This document shows, one piece after another, positions 1 to 15,700 of a stretch of 64,000 nt of DNA. The DNA lies in assembly GCA_050084985.1 (NCBI GenBank), contig JBITNC010000001.1, positions 169,694,001 through 169,758,000 of the forward strand. Reading direction: 5' to 3'. This DNA is from Nageia nagi (Eukaryota > Plantae > Pinophyta). Below the pieces are notes generated by a model that was not told the DNA's origin, did not search any database, and saw nothing but the letters and a program-made list of their open reading frames with translations. Within the stretch, counting starts at the first letter, position 1; each line of letters begins with the position of its first letter. The position numbers and the translations under genes are program-made.

Positions 1-259
1 CAAAAAAATATTAATACAATTTTTTTGTTGTATTATATCTATGCAAGTTCTTTGAAGTGGAGAATCTCATGTATAAAAATCCTGAAATTAAGATGTCAGC
101 CATATATTTGAATGGCCACCATCTTCAATGTTTTCAGTTTTCCAACACTGAGGATTTGTAATGAGCTGATGAAATGTAAGTGGCCAATCTCGATCAACAA
201 ACACTTCCAATCCCCACCTCTTATATACGAAATGTCGTCAGCATATAAAACCTGTGCAG

Positions 260-395
260 GTTTCTCGCCAGAAAAAATGTTTTGTCAGCAAGGAGATCAA
301 CTCTGTAGAAAGTGTTTGGAGGAAGAAACAAATGTGCAGCTACATGATTATGATTATTCTGAGAGATGGGAATTCCTCAAGTCGCTGCCTCACAA
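260..395 (+). CDS. Probable coding exon (GFSPEKMFCQQGDQLCRKCLEEETNVQLHDYDYSERWEFLKSLPHK); either an internal exon of the DUF1853 gene or the last exon (to 402) of another gene
   Basis: TGCAG| acceptor at 255-259 (phase 1), protein-like composition in ORF 112..402, candidate donor AA|GTACTG at 396; in-frame TGA at 400-402 if unspliced. Confidence 0.55.
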
Positions 396-599
396 GTACT
401 GAATCTTATCCTTTCCTCAACATAATTTTCTATGCTGTTATCAAAAATCGTTTGTCTCTTGTTAAAAATGTTGTTTTTCCCCTCATATATGAGTTGATTT
501 GAAATGCTGTTGGATTTTTGTTAACTTAACTCCAAATTGTCCAGACCCATATTTCCAAATCATTCCCCTAGTCAAGGCTTGAATTTTCGTCACTATCAC

Positions 600-830
600 A
601 TAAGGCTTTTTAGTTTCTGTACCTTGTCTAATTGGGTAGATGGGCCCTCCTTAATCCTTAGCTGTTTAGTGCCATGATGACCATTTCGAGAATTGATGTT
701 TTTTGCGGTTGAGGATAATGTGGTCAAAGCCGGATTTCTGGTTGCAAGGCATGGATCAGCTATGACTTGAACCCGATATCTTACCTTGGTAGTGCTAGGC
801 AGTCTACTACTGAGCCACTGGCCCATTGCA
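600..830 (-). mobile_element. tRNA-derived SINE-like element (3' boundary uncertain)
   Basis: Minus-strand Pol III A box TGGCTCAGTAG (817-807) and B box GGGTTCAAGTC (774-764), 32 nt apart; no full tRNA cloverleaf. Confidence 0.55.
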
Positions 831-3000
831 GATTGAGTCTTTTGAGTGTGGATTGAACCTCCAACATTTCTGGGTGATTTTTAGTTCAGTTTGACTAGAT
901 GAAGATCATAATACACTGAGAATTATTTATATGAGAGTTCTAGGTCTCGTGGGCACTAATCCTGCGTTGGTTACTTTAGAAGATACATAGGCCTCACAGT
1001 TATTAGACGCTATATGGAGTAAAACTAATATAGAGTGTGAAATTAGAGTTCAATTGACAGAATTCATCACAGATCTAGGTTGCAGAGCATGGGTGCAACA
1101 GCAAAATCACAAGACATCATAGGGTTGATATTTTTTGCCACTACTCTCTGATGCTTCTAATTACAGCCTTGTGAGACATTTGAAACCCGTTTAGAATTTT
1201 TCTTCAGATACTACAGAATGTTTGATACATGCTATATAGCTTCTCCATGTCTTCCTGCAATTTGATGGGTCCTGGATAACTTTATTGTATCTATTTCACC
1301 AGAGTCAGTCAGGCCTATTCATGGTTGGAGTTTGTAGCCCGCTTTTGGAAATTGAATCTAGGTTGTTTCTGCAATAAGCATGCAACTTGCTATTGGACCA
1401 CTATCAGCACCCCAACTTGTCATAATACAAGGAACACACTTATAAAGAGGATTTTACCTTCTTTATCCACATAACACATCGCTGGGAAGAACTTGTTATA
1501 GGGCGAGAGTGGGAAGACATGCACACACATCAACTCACACACTTTAAGAGAAAAAAGTGAAAATGATAAAGATTAAGTAATGAAGAAAATTAATACTGGT
1601 GGTCCATGAATACTAATAGTGATTGCAATATCATTCCTACTGTGGCTCATTTTATTGTTTGTGTGTGTAGACTTATACGGGACATTGCCTTTGTCATTGC
1701 AAGCCCAGACCTTTTGTTGGATTCTGATGAGGTGAGATATTGATTTATCCCTTGATAATACTTCTTTTATATTTCCATTGCTCAATTATTGTTATTATGG
1801 AGACAATGCATGCTATTAAGTGTGCCATTTTTACATGTTTGTACTATTTTAAAATTTTAATGTCAAATTTTGTTCTAACAATTCTCAGCATAATTAGTTT
1901 TCTCTAATTTTTACCTTACTGTCTCATCGCCCCCAATACCAACTACAGGGGATTAGGGCAATTGGGTTTGACCTCTTTGCCTCATCATCAGACAACTATT
2001 TTTTTACTGTTTAACATTTAGATTGTTGACCGTGATAAGGAGATGTAAGATTCAATTGCCCACATAGGAGCGCTGAGAGGAGATTCATGGGTTCCTACTT
2101 TGTGCTTTTGCATAGTTTATTTAGGGCCAAGGAACCCACTGTCAAGTAGTACTTCACTTTTTAGGCGCTTGGCTAGGTCTCCTCAACCTATCCCTTCGAG
2201 TTGTGGAAGCATACCAACTTACACTTATATCCCTTCTGGGTACCCTTTGGTTTGCATCCCATGGCCAGCCTGTTGTAAATGTTTTAAAGAAGCAAGAATC
2301 CATATCCAAGTTCCATTATTAGTAGAAAATTAAATACTTATGATCTGAATTTTCCTCATAAAAATGTGTCCAAAATTCCAAATCATAATAATCATTCTAT
2401 AAATAATTAAATTCAAGAAAAGAGTGTATGTAAAATAATAAGTCTAAGAGTCTAACCATAGTCATCTTTGATAGATTTGAATAAAACATTCCATTTTGAT
2501 CATTATAGTCAATCACATTACACCATACATCACGGAGGAAATATGCAAAAAGGAACTTTATTCATGCACAAATATGGTTTACATTCACACCCTGCAAGTC
2601 CTGAGGATGGTGCGAAATTTATACAACTCTTAATCCCTAACTTCTTAACCCTAACCTTTACCACTTAGCTGAGAAGAGATAGAAAGTGAGATACTTTGCC
2701 ATGTTGGGCTCACAACCTGGAATGGCAGTGGTAAATGATGACCTGGGGACAGGATTATTAGATATGATTGTTGCACTGGGCTCCCTGCCATCATCGTGTG
2801 ATCATGCGGATATCAACATTAACACATAAATACTCAGTGGAACTATGTGCAAGTCTCCAACCTCCGTTGTTTGCAGCATATGCCAACATCTAAAATAAAA
2901 GATTATGTTCAGAAATATATACACACATCTCAAGGACATTGTATCCAACATCCTGAAAGAGCATTTACCTGTTTCCAAATGCAAGCCTGATGAATCAATG

Positions 3001-4159
3001 TCATAGTGCAGAATCATACGATGATATAATCCTCATCGTCCTTATTGTGGTAAATCCAAAATACGGTAGGAATACAATCTTATTGTCCAGTTCTTAGATT
3101 ACCTTCTGATGCTTTCGAATCACCTGCTGAAGCACCTGAAGTGCATGTTGCTCTCAAGATTCTGTTGTCTCCTATGATAAAATATAGGCCACTATTTCTA
3201 CAGAATCTTATGAGTTTCTACGTTGTATGGAAGTTGATTATGTGTGGAGGCTTGCACTATGTGGATCCTGATGATTTTCCTCTGTTCTTCCAGTTTCAAG
3301 CGCATACTTTTAAAGCTAATGGTCACCTTCCCTCATATTTTGAGCCACTGTACTCTTAATAGCACATCTGCATGTGCAGACTGTAGGAAAAACGTTGGGC
3401 AAAAGATCACATATTCTCCAAAGGACTATTTTAGACTGTAACACTTCCCCTCACAACAAATAGGATCTCCATTTACGGTTCTAGAAGCAGGATAGACAAA
3501 ATCAATTGAGGCTCTTGGCTACATTCTTGCAAACGAAATTGCCAGTCTTGCCAAAATCCTTTGAATGCTGTTCACAACTTTGAGGGTTTGATGAATAGTA
3601 ATACTTTACAGAGTATGAAAGATACTGTGTATGTATCCTCTTCTTGTGCTTGAGTTTTTGGTGCTGAAATATCTGATATATCCTTGTCTGAGCTATCGTA
3701 TGCCTCCTACAAATTACTCATGAAGAGCTTATCATATTTGTGTTCTACAGTATCTTCTGTGTTTGCTGGCCCTACCTAGAATCTCTTTTGTCTTCTGCAG
3801 TATTCATTTATTCAGATTCCAGATAACATGCATGCAGAATTCAATTTAGCATTTCCTAATCGTTAGCCATGGGCCTTTTCTGAACAACCTTGTTCAAGAA
3901 ACATGCAGCAAAATAGCAAGCTGTCAGCTAATAAAGGCTTATACATGCTGGTTTTTTGCTTAGCGTAAAAAAAGGATTTGAAAGGGCCTGTACTCTTGTA
4001 CAATGCAAAAGAAGGCTAGCCAAGTATTATTTACCTGGAAACCATCAACAATCTAAAACAAGCTGAAAAGACAGCTACAAAATGTTGCAATCCTTGCTTC
4101 AAACAGCTACAATTCTTGAATCAATCCACCTTCCAATAACTGCTTTCAAAGAGGTCCAT
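3001..4159 (-). pseudogene. Decayed reading frame resembling a myosin-binding/GTD (zein-binding, DUF593) family protein
   Basis: Across stops and frameshifts, in order: hydrophobic N-terminus, SCEQHSK...FVCKN, CTCRC, MRLKLEEQR, then heptad-like EQHALQVLQQVIRKHQKVI*ELDNKI. Confidence 0.4.
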
Positions 4160-4611
4160 TCACCAATCAAAAATTAAAACCATCTGATTATGCCTATAAC
4201 CAAACTGGGAATAAAGTCTGTTTTTCTTTGAAAATGTTTTTGAGATTGAACCTTTCCATTCCCATCCAAGTTAGACTCATTTTCCATAATTATAATTAGA
4301 TCAGAAGGGAAAATATTCAGGGGAATCCATCTCTTATCCTCTTCTCTAAGAGTAACCCAGTTGCCATCCAGCCTTGTTACCTTTGAAAGTATATAATGTC
4401 CAATGGTTTAATTTATAATCTTTTGACATCAGCAGTAGTTGAAATATTCAAATATATGTATTTACTATTTACAAATTCCCTCCGACGGCTACATCCTCTA
4501 ACTGCTGCAAGTTCAGACATTTATTTTTGTTTACTGTATGATTATATTTTCTCAATCAAATCTGATATTTTCTTTTTTAGGCATTTAGTTAAGAATTTAT
4601 TTCCCTTACAG

Positions 4612-4679
4612 TACTTACTGTTGTAAAGCATGGGCGTCCACATTTCTGTGTTGACTTGTATGGACAGACCATCTATTCT
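4612..4679 (+). CDS. Probable internal exon of the DUF1853 gene (xLTVVKHGRPHFCVDLYGQTIYS)
   Basis: Acceptor TTTCCCTTACAG|, donor TCT|GTTAGT, phase 0 end fits the 9645 acceptor in frame. Confidence 0.55.
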
Positions 4680-5039
4680 GTTAGTCTAACATTGAGTCCC
4701 TTACACTCAACCTTCCTCCTCGAGATGTATAAGGACGTTTTTCCATTGTATTGTATCATTGTTTCTGATCATTCTGCAGTAGCAAGAGCAAGAGAAAAAG
4801 CTCTGCATTTTACCATTTTGTTGTGTCTTCTGTTCTTGTGGTGTTTTTGCATTCTGGGTGAAGCTGTGATCAAGAAATCACTTGCATCTATTTGGAGATT
4901 AGATTTGGAGCTATATAAAAGTAATATTTACTTATTAGATGTCATTTTAATGTGGTGGGTATTCGTTAGTTTTGCATTCTGAGCTTTCATTTTGAAGATA
5001 TTCATGATTCTTTCAAGCTGCCCTTTTACGGACCAGTTT

Positions 5040-5335
5040 GCTTTCGGGAGCTATAACTTTTGTTCTACTGAACCTCTAAGTCCGATTTATACATCATTGG
5101 AAAGGTTTTTTCAATACCTTTCCAACGATATATAACACAAACACCTTTGTATCAAAATCGACACTTCAAATCCACGATTTGCAGCCCTGCACTTACCAGC
5201 CATATTCTTTTCTCAGTCTGTGACCAGTTCACTTCCGGAAAATATTGCCCTATCAAATCAGCTTCAATCACTCCGTTGTTTATACCAATGGATAGCCCTT
5301 TTCATGTCCTTTCTAATGGTATATAACACAACACC
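5040..5335. repeat. Two degenerate copies of a palindromic TE-type motif (CATTGGAAAGG...CCTTTCCAACGATATATAACAC)
   Basis: Copies near 5090-5140 and 5280-5330, each with an internal inverted repeat. Confidence 0.5.
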
Positions 5336-5460
5336 CTTTTCTTCTATATGGAAGCTTTTTTTGAGCCCTATTTTTCAGTTTGTTTACAACTCTGGGGGCA
5401 AGGGAAAACTTCATGCACTTTGCAACTCCACGACCCTAGACGAAGTCCTGTTGGCTGGGA

Positions 5461-5859
5461 CATAGTAGCAAAACTCGTCGAAACTCGCAGGTCCTGAGGC
5501 TGAGTCTGTTGGGAGGAATACCAACAGCTCGGACTCGTGAGTTTGGTGAGTTTGGACCATTTTGTATTGTGAACTTTGAAGTTTTAACATTTTGATGAAT
5601 GTAAACATATGCCCTTTCCTATTTGCCTTTTCTTATTTGTAATTGTGTATATTTTAAATTGTATAATGTTGATGTTGAGTAAGTAGGCTTTTAGAAGTCA
5701 CTAATCACAATAATAAGTAATATGCAATTGAAAAAACTTAATTTTTCAGTGAAAATATACATTGTTTTTTTGTTTTGCCGAGTTTTTGCCAACTTTGACC
5801 AATTTTTTCTTCAAGTCCCGAGTCTCGAGTCCAAGCCAAGTCTGAGATTTACTACTGTG
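5461..5859. mobile_element. hAT-like MITE
   Basis: Imperfect TIRs: CATAGTAGCAAAACTC at left, reverse complement CACAGTAGTAAATCTC at right; subterminal ACTCG/CGAGT repeats; 8-bp flanks match only 5/8. Confidence 0.65.
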
Positions 5860-5999
5860 CTCTGGGGAAGCCTGTAGGTTCATCCTCTCACATAACTTAT
5901 TTCATATTCTTCAAAGGAATCTATCATCTATGGAGTGTCCTAAAGTATGCTAGTTACCTTCCAACTTAAATTAGCTTTGTCTTTTTAGGGAGTTAATTA

Positions 6000-7880
6000 T
6001 ATTCAGAGAGTCTCCATCTACCAACAATTTCTTTACTTTGATATCCTTCGCTAATTTAACACTAGCATAAACAGCTCTTGCTTCAGCTTAATAGCTGATC
6101 ATTTCTTTAGAAAATTCTGTGAAAGCACCAACCATAACTCCCATATTATTTCTAATGATCCTTTTCTCTCCAGGAGTCCAGCCTTTCCAAGATTTCCACT
6201 AGAATCCCCATCAAAGTTTAGTTTAAGTCAATCTGAGTGGATGCTACTGAACATTATTTCTTTTTGAACTCTTAGAAGAAACATATGCTTGAATTGGTTT
6301 CAGTGTCCATCTAGCAGCTAGATAAGCTTCCTCATTATTTTCAATCTAATCTTCCAACTTGATGATGGATAAGTTATCCAAAATCACTTCTTTAATGGAA
6401 TGATTATTTCTCAGAACAGATTTTTTTTTTCTCTTTAAAAATCCTCCTGTTTTTTTCCAATCAAATACTCCAAGCATAATGAAATGGAATGATGTCCCAT
6501 ATTGCATTTAGTCTTCTACTTTTGAAAAAGTTTTTCCTATTGCTTCAAACCCAACATATTATTTGGGAAAATCCAATCAATTCCTATTTCAAAAATGATA
6601 TTAGTAGAAAGAGATGATAAATGGATTCTTCACTGGATTCACAAAGAATACATCTATTAACTAGCTAAAAACCTTCTTTCATCAGATTGTCCAGGGTCAG
6701 AATTTTATTTTGAGAAGCCAGCCAAAGGAACATAGTAATTTTAGAGGTGGCTTTCTTATTCATAATCTTGTTCCAAGGAAATCCTCCTTCTGGTTCATCC
6801 CAAAGAGTATCATAAGTTGATTTAACTGTAAAAAATCCATTTGCATTAGGTCTCCAAGAAGAGAGTCATTTTCCAAAGATGGCTCAAGAAATAAGATATT
6901 AGTTTGAGGTTGAGCAACCTACAAGCCTCTTCCTTTAGGGGGTTGCTACATTTCAAATTTTCCATCCTACGCTTGATTCCTTTGTTTCAATGAAATCTTG
7001 AACTGTACACCCATATTGCATTTCCACCTACTTTCTGATTGTTGAGAGTCTGTTGTCTTTACACAAAGGATAACTGCCCAGCCATGTATCTTCCCAAAAA
7101 TGAACTTTACTCCCCCTTTCAACTTTTTGTCTAATACCTTTCTTAAGAACTCCTCTACTGTTTATGATGTGATTCCATAAAGAAGAGCTCCTACAAGTAT
7201 CTTGAACAGCAACAAGCCTCTCTAGATCATTGCTGTCAAAGTATTTATCTTTTAAGATTCTATCCGTCATTGAATCTCCCTTTTTATAATCCTCCATCCT
7301 ATCTTTCCAGCCAAAACTTTGTTTAAAGTTCTTATCTTTTTTAAACCCAAACCTCCACATGGTTTTGGTGTACAAATTTTTTCCCAGTCAACAAGTGGGA
7401 TTCTACTTTTCTCTTCTAGTCCAGACAATATGAATATTTTTGATACTTTCTATTTTACCAGCATCAGCAATATTTACAAGGATTTTAAACACTGAAAGCA
7501 TGCAAGTATGAATAGATTGGAGGGTACTTTTAAGCAATCGAAAGTACCTGCTTGAGTCAAAAGAGTGCCTTTCTAGCCAAACAGTTTTCGCTTAAGTCCG
7601 TTCAATAAATAATCCCAAATATTGTTCTCACAGGAACCTATAAGCAGAGGCATTCCAAGGTAAACTGTAGGGGGAGAGCTAATATTGCAGGCTAAAATAC
7701 CTGCAATTTTTCTTTTTCTATTCTCGGGTATTAAAAAAAAGAATACTTTACTTTTCTCCAAGTTTATCATTTGATGGAAAGCCAACTTGTATAATTTAGG
7801 AATTATATTGAAACCTCTTGCTTCCTTACAGAAGATTTCCCTATTACCCACAAATCGCTGATGGGCAATGGATTATACAT
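6000..7880 (-). mobile_element. 5'-truncated, decayed L1 LINE (RT C-terminus, zf-RVT region, RNase H-like domain)
   Basis: ORF 7573..7851 INLEKSKVFF...YLGMPL; ORF 7028..7375 VHFWEDTW; LKLNFDG..SGNLGKAG near 6185-6230. Confidence 0.85.
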
Positions 7881-9644
7881 GTTGCTACCTAGGACAATCT
7901 TCAGTATTAATTATCAAATAACATAGTTGAATATCTTGAACTATATGCTCCAACATTTTTGGAATATGAAACAAGAGTTTCTCTTTTACCTTTAAGGCAA
8001 TGACATCTCAGTGGGTCATCCACTTTGGTATAGCAGGAACCTGGGGACGATTTCCTCCTGATAAGGGAGAAAATGATGAACTAGTTAAAGTTAATTCTAC
8101 ATCATTTGCGGTCATCTCATGTTGTGAACATCAGTCTTCAGTATTTTAAGAGTTTTTGTGTCTAGTGTCCATTGTGATTTTGCTCCCAAGTGAAATGAAT
8201 TTTAGACTTTAGAGTTTGTCTTTCTTTAGCAATTAAGATTAGCAACTGCTACACTATGTTTCAAATTCTCTAGCTATGGCAATTTCTGTAAAGAGGTTTT
8301 GCTTATCTTGTGGATGCATATTCCTTCCATGGTTTTAGGCATAGATTTGTTTTCTAAGAATGTTTTCTTTTTTGGTAATTGGTAAAAAAAAGGGTTTTTT
8401 AGACAGTATCCCAAAACCTATATTAAAAAATATGAATCTTAACATCCATATTATCTATTGCAAAATGGTTCCATTACATTTGGTAGCCATTACATAGAAT
8501 ATTCTAACACAGATTTTATCCTTGCAAAATTCCTATATCTATCCTGCTCTAGTTGTCTTGGTTCTTTTTCTTAATTTCTTCCCTTTCAGATAGATCATTT
8601 GCAGTGGTCTGACATTGTAGACGATCTGTTCATTTGCTGCGTTAGTCCTTGGTAGCCCACCTCCTTCTGTATTTGTTTCCCCTGCAACTGATGCGTTTGG
8701 TAGCCCGGCATATGGGAGTGTGGCATGTCATTTCAAATGCTCTGGTACCCATGCCTCGAAACTCTTCAATTCGTGTCACCGGTAACCAATTTTGTGTGAC
8801 TTTTCTCATCCCCTCCTTTTTCACGTGAACAACTGTCTTGTCTGAAACAAGACTTCACCCTCATTTCCGCCAATTTAAGAATGTTTCCAGACGATAGGAA
8901 TTTCATATATATATATTTTGTTACCTTGATTCAACTGTATGGACAATGAACAATTTATCTTGTTTAGAAAGACAATCTTTTGAACCAATTAAAGAAAGTT
9001 GAGTTATCAACCTTGGAGACCAGTATTTAGACGGATTAGGCTGGAATTCATCATCCATGATCTTGTGAAGCCAAAGAAGGGTTTATCTGCACTTCATTTC
9101 TAGTCTTCCTAAATTGGCTCTTGAACCTTTTGTAATGCTTTAAATTGAGAGGATGTTACAATGTTCTAGAAAGATGGACATGTTTTACCACTCTTTGGTT
9201 TAGCAAGGCATACTTTATTTTCTCCCAAGGATCTTTCCTTCCGGAGGAAGCTTTTCTAGGCAATACCTTTTCTGCTTAATTCAGATGCAGCCCTTGCTGT
9301 AGTAATTGTCTCAACAATGGAATCACAAGACTAGTCTTCTATGCATGCAGTATATGAATTGTTTTGGTATATACCTCTTTCTCTATTTGCTTATACTATC
9401 TGAAGCAAACATGGACCAAACCTGTTAATTTATGGATGATGCTCCTTTACTTCATGCAATCATATCATTTATTTTTGTGATGAGAAACTACTACTTTTAT
9501 GATGGAAAAATGTTACATCTAGTGTTATTCTTGATCCTTAGACTGTTGATTGCCATCTTATTAGTAAATATGTCACTGAATGTGGAATATTTATTTTTTG
9601 ATTCCATGAACCTTTACAAACTTATACAATCTCTCTATTTAAAG

Positions 9645-9777
9645 CTTCCAACAGTGACTGCTGACATGCTGGGTGGAGATGCATGGAAGTGGAATGAGTC
9701 TAAAAATTGGTTGAAGGAGTTAGAGATGCAGCATGTAAATGATTGGTTTGGAGCTCGGAAATGCAGAACAAGATTGG
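9645..9777 (+). CDS. Penultimate coding exon of DUF1853-family gene (LPTVTADMLGGDAWKWNESKNWLKELEMQHVNDWFGARKCRTRL-G)
   Basis: Acceptor AAG| at 9644 (alternative CAG| at 9654); donor G|GTATGT at 9778; phase 1 join to 11002 recreates RLG. Confidence 0.8.
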
Positions 9778-11001
9778 GTATGTTAGTATAGGTTCACTGC
9801 TTTCAAATTGAAAACAAACACTGATAGAGACAAAAATATATGTTAATTTGTTTCATTACAAACATTGAATTTTCCTGTGAAGAATATAAAGAGCAAATTA
9901 ATAATATTTTCACTATTAAAAGACATTTATCTTTGAACATGTAAAGTGCCAAAAATGTCTTCATATTCTTTGTGCCAAGTGTTACCAGATCAACTTTCAA
10001 CCTGAAACATAAAACAAGAAGGAATCCACTATCATAGTAGAACTAGCATGGTTCGAGCAATCCCTAAATCAAACTTAAGAAGGATACTACCTTTTAGCTG
10101 CATTGCACACTAGAACAATCCATCATGGAAGAGATTATGGCCATCACAAACCTCCCAAGGAGAACCTACTATGGTTCTAGTGCCATTTTTGTTCTTTGGT
10201 ATCAATATCCTCCAAAGGCTCACTTATGGATCCACCCTTATACCATAATCCCATGGATGCAAGAGGATTGTTCTTAACACCTTGAAGCCTAAATAATAAT
10301 TGGTGACAATAGTAGATCATATTTGGATTCCATCCCCCAATGGGCATTGGGCTTATCCCTACTGCCTCCAATTGGAATTTCACCACTATCCATACACCTT
10401 TCCTTTATATCTTCTTTGCACATTTCAGAATTTAACATATGTGAACACTGAAAATAATGTTTTAAGGGCATGCCATGGATTTATTTAAGCACAATAACCA
10501 TTCCATCCCATGGGTACTGAGTCTATAAGTAAAGCTATATGCAATCCAACTGAATTGATTATGCTCTTGCTGATGACACTTTAGGCTAATACTAGGACAC
10601 ACCAACTAGAGGGCACTCCCTTATGTGACTAACACAAGGCATTCCATCTTGTGACTATGACACTTTTGATTAGTCTCTCCCTTTCCCAAGTACATTCCAA
10701 CCTAGGATGTACAAGCAATAACACCACATAATAAAATGTGTTTAATATTTGAAAGAATATATAATTAATAATTTCATATTAGAAGAATGTTATATCTATA
10801 TATATGAGGAGAACAATACAAGAAATCATGCTTATAGATATAATATTTTTGTGAAGTAGTTGGTTGCAGAGCAAAGTTGAGCGAAAATTTCTACCCTTCC
10901 AAGTACAATTGCAACAACCAGGATATTATATCTGTCATTTTCTTCTAAGTGTAACTACCATTTTATATTATCCAGTTAATTGATTCCCGTCTGATTCCCA
11001 G

Positions 11002-12722
11002 GAGACCATTTTGCTGCATGCATTGAATATGTATTACGGTTTTCCCCTGTTGTGCAAGTTGAACGGCTTGTTGTTTCTCAACAAGTAATGGAACAAATAG
11101 ACATTGATGGCAGACATTCATTTTGTCAAAAAGACGGACTGAGGTCTGAAAGGAACATATGGCAACCTGTTTCTCAGCAATCAGAAAATCTTGAAACTTC
11201 ATTAAATAGTACTGATTTATCAGAGCTGAATATTTTGCAAATGAGTGAAGGTGATCTCAATATGGCACTAATGGTAGATATAGAGGATGATGATGCTGGG
11301 TATCGTGGAGATCACTGTCAAAATCAAAGACAGCAAAATAAATTGATTAAGAAAAGGAACAAATTGAAATCTAGGAAAACTTTGGTACGAACGATTGGCG
11401 AGTTTGATTTTTTGTTTCAGCATCATGATATTAATCACTGTGCTCCTAAATCTACAACCAGTTGCAAACTATATGCAGGTGGCTTTGAGAGTATAACCCA
11501 AGATTTGTCTGAATCAGACTTTCCATACAAGGATGTCTTTGTGAAAGTACAGCACTGGGAAGCTTCAGTTAAGTTTCTGTTGTATGCAGGTCCTTGGGAG
11601 GCATTTGGTTTTGAAACGCCAGAAAGTGCCACATGGGAAGCAAAAAGGGTTGATCATTCTCTGGAGGAAAGTAATTTGTATGAGCATAACCATCAAGGTA
11701 GTCCTGATTCAACTATTGCAAACCCTTCTACTTTATCAGAATCTGCTTTTGAAAATAGCGAGTTTATTGGCTGTTTTCTTGGTCCACATGTAGGGGAGAC
11801 TCTCTATGACAGGAAATGTCGACTGCGAAATCAGCTTGCTCTCTCACAGAACCCATTAGCTGCTTCCTTTCTTCACAGGACTTACACTATTTCAGAATTA
11901 TCAGAGCAGGTTGAATTTACTGAGTGTTGTTCTGATGGGCTTGGTAGCAAAGGAGATGATTTAATGACGGTGGGTAATAAACCTGTCTTAGAGATTGTCC
12001 CTGGTGCAGTGTTGAAAGGTTTCTTGTTTTATGAGTGTAAGCTATGGGAGCTTTTGAGAAAATTGCAAAGAGGAAATAAAGCATTTTATTCCTATGACCT
12101 CTATTCTAGATTAACGCCAAACTCTTCAACCGATGATCAGGTCATGGATCCTAATCCCCTTTTCAAATCTCATTCTGAAAGGACATCTACTTTGTCCAAA
12201 ATGAATCATTGTTTTGAGTGCTATCATGTTAAATTAAAGCCAAATAGATCAATGCTCAATCCACATCATTGGATGGGGTGGTGGACTCATATTGATGAAT
12301 TTTCCAAGTTTGCAGGATTTGCTGCTTGTGAGAAAAGCAGGTGGTACATAGTTCCAAAGCAAGAATGGCTTTCACCTGTTATTATAAATGGGTCTGATTT
12401 GGATGGTTGTGCAAAGGTATTGACATTGGAAGAATTTTTGGCTGTGGCTGCCAAAGTTGGCGAGGAAGCTGCTTTGACAAGAATTCCTAGAAAGCGCTGT
12501 TTTATGGTTGCAGAAGTTCGCTGGGAAACTGATTTCACATATACACAGAGATCTGAAGGTCAATTTGAAGACAGCCACTGTTTGCCTTTGCACAGTTCTG
12601 GAGTTTGGGTTGAACAAAGCAGAGGATTTGTAGTTGAAGAAACATGGCCAGATAGCAGAGTGTACAGGCCGCACGGTTATCTGCCAAGCTGGTCACCTAT
12701 TTTGCAGCAAGGGTTTAAATAA
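11002..12722 (+). CDS. Terminal coding exon of DUF1853-family protein (predicted PD-(D/E)xK nuclease-like)
   Basis: Acceptor TTCCCAG| at 11001; open to TAA at 12722; ordered motifs RLGxxF, RTIGEFDFLF, HWEASVKF, FLGPHVGETL..R..RL..QL.LS, LKGFLFY, HWMGWW, RWYIVPKQEWLSP, SRGFVVEETWP. Confidence 0.88.
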
Positions 12723-15700
12723 AAAAAGCTTCAACCTCTAATGAATATATTAGAGTGTGCAGCTCAAGGCCCACTTCTGAGCATTCCTTTTACAAACATT
12801 GTATCTCAAAATTAAGCAAAACATATGCAATGATAATGGCAATTGACAACATTAACATCCTTTAGGTCATCTTGGTATATAGGGGCTGTTGAAGCTAACT
12901 CCAATAATTTGTACTTTATTATATTGTTTTCATGTATACTATAAACAGAACATAAATTTGTGCAACATCTATTCTCCTCCTGCCCAGGTTCCTTGGTGGT
13001 TTATCTTTTGATGTTTGTCTAATGTAAAGTTGAAAAGGTAAAAAATCCTTATCATTACAATCATACTCTATTACCTTATGGTCCCGTGCAGGGGGGCTTG
13101 TTGAAATTTCTTAACGGGTGCCACTCCACAATTTTAGGGATGTTTTAGCAGGTAAATGGTCGCTTGGAAGTATGTGTTTGCCACTGTTTGTTAATTTTTA
13201 AATGTAAATTATTTTTATTGAAATGTGGTAGAATCTTCATTAAGTGATCAAAAAGTTTTCAGTCCCCCCTACCCCTCCATCACCAGCTTGAAATTTTGAT
13301 TATTGCTTCACAATTATTGGAAAAATCTTATTTCAGCAGTAGCAACAGGTACTTAAATCTTGCATGAGACTAACTGCTACATAAAATTAGGAGTGGCAGC
13401 TTCCCTCGTCAGACCACTGTATTACAGCATATCTCTTATCCAGAAATCTAGTTTTCTATGGATCCATGTGTCTGACGTTGTTTGATTACAGTAGATTGAA
13501 GATTGGAATCCTACAACACTATTAATTCATGTTAGGGTAGCATTCTTTAATTCTAATCTCAGTTTTTTTAAATTTAGTAATCATGAGTCCTAATATCTTC
13601 GTGAATGGTTAAGATAAATGCTTAATGGTTATTTGCTATCAGCTTTTGAATGTGAAAGCAAAGGCAATGATTTATTAGCTCGAACCCTCAAAGTGCTGAC
13701 ATCTTCATTGTTCTTTAAAAGTTAAAACACAAGGACATGTTCATCGGAGAAGTGACAGAGAGGTACTTATGGATAGGTCATGGTGAATAATGTACATGAT
13801 TGAAGTTTAACAAAAGCCATGGTGAATGCTATAACATGACAATTTTATTACGAGTCTTATTTTTGTTAAAAAAAATCATTTAAATAGTAAATACATAAAT
13901 GATATATATTTATCATTGAATTTAAAGGATGTTAAAGCATCATGCATTCATTGATTGTGTTTTTGGTGAGAAAGGATAATATATATATTTGACAGCTGAA
14001 AGGCATGTGATTTTCCAAATATGTGAAGTCATGTAGGAAACATACCTGACAGTTGCCTATAGTACGTAAAACATCCACTTTATAATATAAAGGTCATTTT
14101 TCAGGCATATTTGAGTCGGTACATTTATTTAGCATATACAAGTTCTTTTTATTTTGCCTAATAGATTTTAAATTTATACTAAATAAATTTTTGTTCTTCG
14201 ATTAAGCTTGTAGAAAATCAAGAACTTGTCAATTCATCTTAGCCTAATTTCTCAATTATTTTAAAAATATTATTTTACAAATCATCATGCTTAAAAGAGT
14301 ATGAAATCAGACAGTACTGGTAACAACAAAATGTAATATGTAATGGACTTGATTTTCACCCGATGTATCTATGTCATGTTATTAATAATTAGCAGATTTA
14401 AGTTATGGAATAGCTGGACTGAGAACAAAGTCCTGATGAGATCTAGGTGTGTAACATAGATAAAACATTTTGCTTCATATCAAAAAGAAATTTTGGCAAT
14501 GCAAATTCAAATCGACATCAAACCTTGGAAAATGAAAATGGAAGTTGTACATCAAATATAAAATTACACAGTACACACTTTTACTGTAACTTATATATCA
14601 CGATGTCAATTAATTTCTTTAACAAGGTTTAAATATAGGAAGGACTAAATTTAGTTAATATATATGAAGTGATATTTCTCCCTTTTGACTGAGGCACACA
14701 TGCATAATCTTTACCTTCTATATAGTTGATTTCCTTTTAATGTGAACTTTCATTTACATCAAAGCAGGTTTTTGGTTAATCCTACAATGATAAGGAGATC
14801 CATTTCATCAAAGTCACTTAAGGATTGATTGAGATCTATTTTGTTGCAATCATAAGGATTGAATAAGATCCATTCCATCAAAGTGGCCTAATAATTGAAG
14901 TCTTATGGCACCCATGATAGATCAAACCATTGTGGACTCTGATTGAGCTATTGATATTCATTAGTTGAACATTGCTCTATGGGTTATATGAAATTAAAAT
15001 TACACTCATTAATATGTCAAGTGTATGACAAAAATTAACTTCGAGGAAATCAAGGCTAACAAGAGTTAGTACCATTAGTTTATACTAGGCATTGGATAAT
15101 GCAATGAATAAATAATAAATTACAATAATAAATATAATGGATTCGAAATTGAAATAAAATGAGAAGTGTTAGAGACATGTAGTTGATATGATGATGGGTG
15201 AACCTTGTCTGCCAAACTTGTGAAATATTGATGTAATGGATTGAAAATTGTTTCAAAGGTTTTCATGTTGAACTATAAACATATCCTTTGGTGGTTGATC
15301 TACAATATTATCCTCAAAATGATCGTTACATTATAGTAAATGTATAAATCTACTTATGTGATCAATAGTTTCTCAATATAAATCTATTTGTTACATGAAT
15401 ATTATTTTCTCAATACATTTGCTTGTTGTAGTGGTTCATTTATTTGTTATTTACTTGCAATGGTTCATATATTTCCTATTTACAGGCAATAAATCATGTA
15501 AGTTCTAGAATTCTAATTTAGCCTTACATATTTCATATAAAGAAAATCATTTAATTATTTAGATAGATAGATAGCTGCCCTTTAAGATCCAATTAAATCT
15601 ATTTGTTTGTAGGACCTATCAAAGTTTGTCTAAAAGTAAAATATATATCGATTAAATATTTGAATGGTTGTTTCTCATATAATGAAAACATTGAACAATG

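Follow-up and report, generated by a model that had tools for sequence, protein, structure and literature searches.

A spliced four-exon DUF1853 gene with intact predicted PD-(D/E)XK nuclease motifs, kept from charophyte algae to gymnosperms

DUF1853 (PF08907, COG3782) proteins are best known from bacteria, mostly Pseudomonadota, in which they comprise approximately 300–320 residues. The family was placed in the PD-(D/E)XK nuclease superfamily by Laganeckas et al. 2011 (PMC3045609), who reported UPF0102 (3fov) as its closest profile match, a motif III lysine that is shifted to give an EXXXK arrangement, an extra lysine in the next helix, and a small number of longer eukaryotic proteins from 'plants, algae, phytophthora'. 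The function of the family is given as unknown by Steczkiewicz et al. (PMC3424549). No functional work on DUF1853 was found in the literature, where the family is mentioned in these two surveys of PD-(D/E)XK nucleases. Here, a DUF1853 gene is described in a 64,000-nucleotide stretch of Nageia nagi DNA (contig JBITNC010000001.1), which is referred to as the window and whose coordinates are used throughout. The gene is split into four coding exons, is expressed and spliced, and has been inherited vertically across streptophytes from green-algal ancestors. Its product is probably a metal-dependent phosphodiesterase of the nucleus or cytosol with a PD-(D/E)XK fold.

The plant protein and its bacterial relatives share the N-terminal RDxAWVxxSPxLL motif, an acidic residue in the first core helix, the GE-x-D and H-W-E-x-x-V-K motifs, and the C-terminal GWW...W.I.PK.EWLSPV...RGFVV blocks. 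In contrast, the overall identity is 23–32%, the acid of the first helix is shifted by one turn in the plant protein, and the plant sequence contains a Lys/Arg-rich helix and is encoded by a gene with introns. The plant protein is a single DUF1853 domain of approximately twice the bacterial length, and the additional length derives from lineage-specific, poorly conserved linkers. Exon 4 alone matches the Pfam model with 54.3 bits against a cutoff of 25 (E 1.9e-14), with residues 410–544 of the protein aligned to profile positions 190–285, whereas exon 3 alone returned only a chance-level row. The exons were also searched separately with a family profile of 64 sequences, which are mostly bacterial. 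Exon 2 covers positions 15–32 of this profile, exon 3 covers 36–74 and exon 4 covers 77–330; these consecutive positions indicate that the four-exon gene encodes one continuous DUF1853 domain. The LIRDIAFVIASPDLL segment of exon 2 corresponds to the VRDLAWVxxSPxLL motif at the start of the bacterial proteins.

The gene model (Table 1) was built from tblastn searches with gymnosperm, Amborella, lycophyte and fern orthologues, combined with the window sequence and a check of the reading phases. The orthologues align to four ordered pieces of the window, not two, and these pieces cover residues 42–729 of the orthologue P0002. The coding sequence totals 2079 nt (692 codons and a stop); the exon phases are 0/2, 2/0, 0/1 and 1/0, and all introns have GT..AG ends. 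The ...ERWEFLKSLPH segment of the orthologues P0002 and P0004 aligns in exon 1, which has its MSS start in common with two gymnosperm orthologues, and exon 2 is 82–86% identical to the gymnosperm orthologues. The junction between exons 1 and 2 is a predicted one, placed by orthologue colinearity and phase and not by read contigs. The initial annotation, which was made from the sequence alone, had proposed an intact, intron-containing plant gene of the DUF1853 family, with a terminal exon that begins at 11002, contains a 556-residue open reading frame and is joined in phase 1 to position 9777. The identity and the terminal exon were borne out, and all eight motifs that it quoted are present in the translation. 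The frame of the 556-residue open reading frame (11052–12722, forward strand) is open back to the AG at 11000–11001, and splicing of exon 3 to exon 4 in phase 1 yields ...TRLG/DHFAACIEYVLRFSP, as in the orthologues. The acceptor at 9645 and the 9777/11002 junction were placed exactly; exons 1 and 2 were missed, and the gene begins upstream of 9645. The annotation was also right that this is the only long open frame, as no other open reading frame of at least 150 residues is present on either strand of the window. By rough arithmetic, a run of 572 stop-free codons has a chance probability of ~1e-15 across the window, in which stop codons are frequent at a G+C content of 32%.

Table 1. Features of the DUF1853 gene in window coordinates.
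Feature	Position	Strand	Remarks
5' untranslated region	118..231	+	5' limit approximate, inferred from the length of the run X3 contig
Coding exon 1	232..395	+	ATG at 232 (MSS...); ends in phase 2; donor GTACTG; P0002/P0004 tblastn
Intron 1	396..1670	+	GT..AG; inferred from orthologue colinearity and reading phase
Coding exon 2	1671..1731	+	acceptor ..GTAG, donor GTGAGA; carries the N-terminal DUF1853 motif LIRDIAFVIASPDLL
Intron 2	1732..9644	+	GT..AG, 7.9 kb; in four runs the contig ends before 9643 equal window 1702-1729
Coding exon 3	9645..9777	+	LPTVTADMLGG...RKCRTRLG; acceptor ..AAAG, donor GTATGT; ends in phase 1
Intron 3	9778..11001	+	GTATGT...CCCAG, 1224 bases; skipped by contigs of X1, X2, X3 and X5
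Coding exon 4	11002..12722	+	acceptor ..CCAG; 572 whole codons and stop TAA; rest of the DUF1853 domain
Motif I Glu (E in CIEYVL), first core helix	11025..11027	+	nearly invariant in plant orthologues
Streptophyte-specific basic cluster RQQNKLIKKRNKLKSRK	11328..11378	+	helix in the Selaginella orthologue model
Motif II Asp (D in GEFDFLF)	11406..11408	+	invariant in plants
Motif III Glu-x-x-x-Lys (within HWEASVKF)	11559..11573	+	E in 86/86 and K in 85/86 aligned members
Most conserved C-terminal block (HWMGWW ... RWYIVPKQEWLSPV ... RGFVVEETWP)	12267..12650	+	Pfam-matched part; holds invariant columns
3' untranslated region	12723..12980	+	end approximate; contigs of three runs stop at 12977-12984

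Splicing was observed in public sequencing runs. Part of exon 4 is present in twenty runs from eight studies, and seven of these contain at least half of its words; five of the seven are labelled with one organism, and related taxa hold exon 4 too. Contigs of four runs from four studies (X1, X2, X3 and X5) were aligned to window positions 8800–13400. In all four, 9776/7 is joined to 11001/2 with the intervening 1224 bases skipped, and the sequence directly 5' of 9645 is that of the exon 2 end, which confirms the 7.9 kb intron 2. The X3 contig (2453 bases) reaches 339 bases 5' of exon 3, corresponding to exon 2 (61 bases) and 278 bases assigned to exon 1; the final 30 letters of this extension were displayed and the remainder was deduced. 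This reach places the transcript start at or before ~118. The 3' untranslated region is approximately 260 bases long, with a 3' end near 12980 that is shared by three runs. Intron contigs are patchy and have a depth of 3–7, compared with 9–28 for the exons (3–5 times lower). The runs are most simply read as mRNA, given the spliced form, the common 3' end and contig totals of 33–64 million letters for a genome that is clearly very large. Two further observations concern the gene structure and its setting. The Cryptomeria protein P0001 (LOC131076467 isoform X2) begins with another short first exon (MLRKSATVKLGT...) that joins at the counterpart of window exon 2, which suggests that genes of this family may have alternative first exons. 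Intron 2, at 7.9 kb, together with the 32% G+C content and the lack of other open reading frames of at least 150 residues, gives the window the look of a very large, gymnosperm-type genome filled with transposable elements (TEs).

Orthologues are present from charophyte algae to gymnosperms and Amborella. The best matches to the window protein are from Cryptomeria (58% identity), three gymnosperm-like proteins (54%), Ginkgo (48%) and Amborella (38%), followed by Diphasiastrum, Adiantum and Ceratopteris; Selaginella was reached with the Amborella query. Cluster look-ups added Sphagnum, Chara braunii, Closterium, the chlorarachniophyte Amorphochlora, oomycetes and Chromera. The locus is the orthologue of Cryptomeria japonica LOC131076467 and Amborella trichopoda LOC18440672, which, like Ginkgo Gb_40100 and Chara braunii CBR_g34324, are annotated as uncharacterised. 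The streptophyte orthologues are colinear with the window protein over the four exons and have the same motifs and basic cluster; they differ from it in the length and sequence of the linkers. Identity to the gymnosperm relatives is 78% over the domain columns and 54% overall, which points to constraint on the domain. A profile search of 1.84 billion representatives recovered only 241 proteins at E ≤ 0.001, which marks the family as small, and the window's own protein is not among 5.8 billion collected proteins. A protein atlas search with the conserved C-terminal block gave no usable match.

Phylogenetic trees were calculated from 309–310 profile columns after alignment to the family profile with hmmalign. 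A quick tree of 84 rows, with support from the Shimodaira–Hasegawa-like approximate likelihood ratio test (SH-aLRT), recovers the embryophytes (98), the seed plants (99) and, within the latter, the window protein as sister to Cryptomeria (94), with Chara and Closterium outside the embryophytes. In a careful tree of 60 rows, the eukaryotic members form one clade (100/97, bootstrap/SH-aLRT). The gene tree thus follows the species tree, which indicates vertical inheritance and implies that any bacterial origin is ancient. No other angiosperm was found when the Amborella protein was searched against the 5.8 billion proteins, bearing in mind that predicted-protein databases can miss unannotated genes, and none of the unlabelled matches is closest to Amborella. 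The absence of the gene from angiosperms other than Amborella is therefore strongly indicated, though not final. This outcome agrees with the initial annotation, which did not recognise the gene from angiosperm models: Amborella is the sole angiosperm match and no characterised orthologue was found. Its novelty was overrated, however. The presence of DUF1853 proteins in plants had been remarked on in 2010, and orthologues are already public as 'uncharacterized protein'; the locus is a new orthologue in a known, unstudied family that has been kept from charophytes to gymnosperms and Amborella.

The three predicted PD-(D/E)XK catalytic sites are all intact, namely the Glu in the first core helix, the Asp of GEFD and the Glu-x-x-x-Lys of HWEASVKF. 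The helix-1 acid occupies the same column in all eukaryotes and in a Chlamydiales protein, and is located one helical turn earlier in most bacteria. At motif II, Asp is present in 77 of the 86 aligned family members, and the remaining nine, which carry Lys, belong to a clade of exonuclease fusions described below. Because all predicted catalytic residues are intact, metal-dependent phosphodiester cleavage is the most likely mechanism: the Glu/Asp/Glu..Lys site would bind divalent metal and cleave DNA or RNA. The protein would act in the nucleus or the cytosol, as suggested by the streptophyte Lys/Arg-rich helix and by an acidic N-terminus in seed plants that does not resemble a transit peptide. 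The basic cluster, RQQNKLIKKRNKLKSRK, has the look of either a nuclear localisation signal or a helix that binds nucleic acid. In the 30 residues that precede GEFD, Lys and Arg number 10–11 in embryophytes and Closterium and eight in Chara, compared with 3–4 in bacterial and oomycete homologues.

The fold was modelled with AlphaFold on the compact Selaginella orthologue (414 residues), for which a 64-sequence alignment gave a predicted local distance difference test (pLDDT) score of 85 and a predicted template modelling score of 0.84. The order of elements in this model is helix 87–98, strand 104–117, strand 163–176 (with D171), strand 183–196 (with E189 and K193), several helices and strand 247–261. 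In an exhaustive VIA-align search, the top rows are mostly PD-(D/E)XK proteins, including the R2 endonuclease, NucS, Can2/Card1, UPF0102 3fov, HamA, TnsA and AddAB, and also the nucleases MGME1, Exo5, Cas4, McrC, Dna2 and FAN1. The UPF0102 structure 3fov, the same family that was closest by profile, aligns over 84 residues with a Z of 4.6. The core topology of the model matches that of UPF0102/YraN (3fov), NucS 2vld, TnsA, Cas4 and the R2 endonuclease domain. Compared with these minimal PD-(D/E)XK nucleases, the lysine of DUF1853 is moved by two positions (EXXXK), sequence similarity is undetectable and the Z values are weak, and no fold was matched to the large N- and C-terminal elaborations. 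A restriction-endonuclease-like PD-(D/E)XK core is thus supported, but not proven. The superfamily assignment of the initial annotation agrees with both published surveys (PMC3045609, PMC3424549), and the structural matches, although weak, point in one direction.

A further indication of function is provided by domain fusions. All ten long homologues of the oomycete/chromerid type that were scanned (P0064, P0069, P0072, P0075, P0084, P0098, P0101, P0102, P0113 and P0133) contain DUF1853 followed by a DEDD 3'-5' exonuclease (PF01612), and six of them also have a YbaK-like aminoacyl-tRNA editing domain (tRNA_edit, PF04073). These fusions tie DUF1853 to nucleic-acid, possibly tRNA, metabolism. 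The architecture is described in neither PMC3045609 nor PMC3424549. The fusion proteins, which include Lagenidium N0F65_009728, an Aphanomyces protein and Chromera Cvel_22497, belong to the same eukaryotic clade as the plant protein and share its helix-1 acid position and E-x-x-x-K motif. They differ in that the additional domains are missing from the plant protein, that Lys stands in place of the motif II Asp (GQLK), and that the basic cluster is absent. In this clade, the DUF1853 domain may bind rather than cut nucleic acid, given the loss of this Asp. The PADLOC models of anti-phage defence proteins and NCBIfam returned no match for plant, chlamydial and gammaproteobacterial members, save one non-significant row.

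Several observations weigh against an active nuclease of the nucleus or cytosol. The fold was transferred from a 40%-identical orthologue because exon 4 by itself, modelled by AlphaFold from an alignment of 20 plant sequences, yielded an unusable structure (pLDDT 47). A Foldseek search of the PDB with the Selaginella model returned nothing at E ≤ 0.001. The Z values from VIA-align, 4–5.4, lie in a range that is common by the tool's own note, in which values below 8 are not decisive. A profile search of PDB sequences revealed no solved DUF1853-like structure. In the literature, no assay of any DUF1853 member was found, and the EXXXK spacing is without demonstration in any characterised enzyme of the superfamily. 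The loss of the motif II Asp in the exonuclease-fusion clade indicates that the domain can persist without this residue. In fern orthologues, the N-terminus is extended by Ser/Thr-rich sequence, which could serve as a transit peptide. Among 36 same-strand open reading frames that immediately flank the bacterial genes at approximately 30 loci, no conserved context was observed; the only recurring neighbour is a glycerate-kinase-like gene (DUF4147/MOFRL), found three times. The RNA nature of the sequencing runs is only guessed. Finally, the window has TGT (Cys) at 12498 (codon 499 of exon 4), within PRKRCFMVAEV, in place of a near-invariant Arg in the orthologues (PRKRRF), and all four runs read C at this position, which restores Arg. 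An assembly error, a private allele or a mildly deleterious variant could account for the Cys.

Some of these points suit a protein that has kept the fold and lost the enzyme activity, and that serves as a nucleic-acid-binding or scaffolding module. Many PD-(D/E)XK domains have turned into non-enzymatic modules. The oomycete/chromerid clade, which swapped GEFD for GQLK and keeps the domain beside a real exonuclease, is a candidate example, and both the undemonstrated EXXXK arrangement and the Cys allele of the window are consistent with such a role. However, the motif II Asp is found in every aligned member outside the exonuclease-fusion clade, and the motif III Glu and Lys are close to invariant across the family (Table 1). 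Near-invariance of all three residues is unexpected for a purely structural role, and the helix-1 acid is kept as well. A non-enzymatic module is hence rather unlikely, and a metal-dependent phosphodiesterase remains the preferred reading.

An active enzyme might instead be organellar and act on the DNA or RNA of plastids or mitochondria. The eukaryotes that hold the gene are mostly plastid-bearing, or formerly so (the green lineage, Amorphochlora, Chromera and the oomycetes), and N-terminal extensions rich in Ser/Thr or Ala/Arg are present in ferns and in P0054, a protein of 465 residues from a clade beside the streptophytes. By contrast, the N-termini that precede the domain are strongly acidic in the window protein and other gymnosperms, the Selaginella protein has only seven residues before the domain, and the Lys/Arg cluster is similar to a nuclear signal. 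Although localisation is weakly tested by these features, an organellar site is unlikely. A decaying or TE-captured fragment, bacterial contamination or a recent bacterial transfer with an open frame, which might be imagined for a TE-rich window with no other long open reading frame and a family that is mostly bacterial, is practically untenable, being contradicted by four exons with spliceosomal introns, full-length colinearity from Chara to Amborella, spliced contigs in four studies, nesting of the protein within the seed plants in the trees, and 23–32% identity to any bacterial protein.

With respect to the ultimate source of the gene, the initial annotation had suggested an ancient bacterial origin by horizontal or endosymbiotic transfer. 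The antiquity stands, as any bacterial origin must precede the vertical descent described above, and its term 'bacterial-type' is not to be taken for a recent transfer; the endosymbiotic, cyanobacterial route is unsupported, with no cyanobacterial sequence among the best 80 bacterial loci. The best bacterial score against the plant profile belongs to a protein from a Chlamydiales genome bin (L002:3965-4918, identical to P0071), which has the eukaryotic position of the helix-1 acid. A tree in which this protein was constrained to group with the eukaryotes exceeds the free quick tree by 25.5 log-likelihood units. When a close relative (P0217) and a protein of Protochlamydia naegleriophila (P0285) were added, the three chlamydial rows joined the eukaryotic clade with support of 97/93 in the careful tree, in which they are paraphyletic at its base. 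The grouping was chosen post hoc, after the motif had been seen, and involves few sequences; two of the three rows deviate in composition, the branch is short (0.07), and the bacterial sample was picked by similarity to the plant query. By plain identity, the Chlamydiales protein is closer to gammaproteobacteria (35–40%) than to plants (~28%).

Genes of chlamydial affiliation have been noted before in plastid-bearing eukaryotes and are disputed; DUF1853 would be a fresh candidate for such affinity and not a new phenomenon. A speculative history may be proposed, in which the eukaryotic gene arose from one ancient exchange with Chlamydiae, descended vertically in streptophytes for >500 million years, was lost once in flowering plants after the divergence of Amborella and encodes an active EXXXK nuclease that acts on RNA or tRNA. 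The hint at such a substrate comes from the oomycete and chromerid proteins, in which the domain is fused to an RNase-D-type exonuclease and a YbaK-like deacylase. We regard this combined scenario as tentative and, taken as a whole, doubtful.

The gene itself is ordinary, as the family was put in the PD-(D/E)XK nucleases in 2010–2012 and orthologues are in public proteomes. Nevertheless, it offers a handle on an orphan enzyme family that is conserved from charophyte algae to gymnosperms. Since DUF1853 is seemingly missing from all angiosperms except Amborella, the family is invisible in Arabidopsis, rice and other models, which may explain why it has never been studied. The EXXXK arrangement is a testable active-site variant that is undocumented in characterised members of the superfamily. 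The locus also provides a plant nuclear gene with candidate chlamydia-related ancestry; cases of this kind are contentious, and compilations of them usually draw on model genomes, which lack the DUF1853 gene.

Minor observations concern a bacterial neighbour and sequence variants. One bacterial DUF1853 gene adjoins a gene for the RtcB tRNA-splicing ligase on the same strand. Apart from the Arg codon at 12498, all four runs differ from the window at 11720 and 12116, which are silent, and at 12839 in the 3' untranslated region. Differences at 11954 (silent) and 12519 (R/C) are present in three runs, and one at 12106 (S/C) is present in a single run. A minor acceptor (..TGCAG, 11585–11589) is used in one 58-base contig of X1, which joins 9777 to 11590. 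This skip of 1812 bases (1224 + 588) is in frame, and the resulting form would drop 196 codons that include all three catalytic motifs and the basic cluster. In X5, the sole contig across 11556–11633 is without these 78 bases, which lie between two copies of an 8-base repeat, TGGGAAGC. No splice signals accompany the gap, which keeps the frame and takes out the E-x-x-x-K motif (HWE[...]AKR); it resembles a product of slippage or template switching, or a deletion allele.

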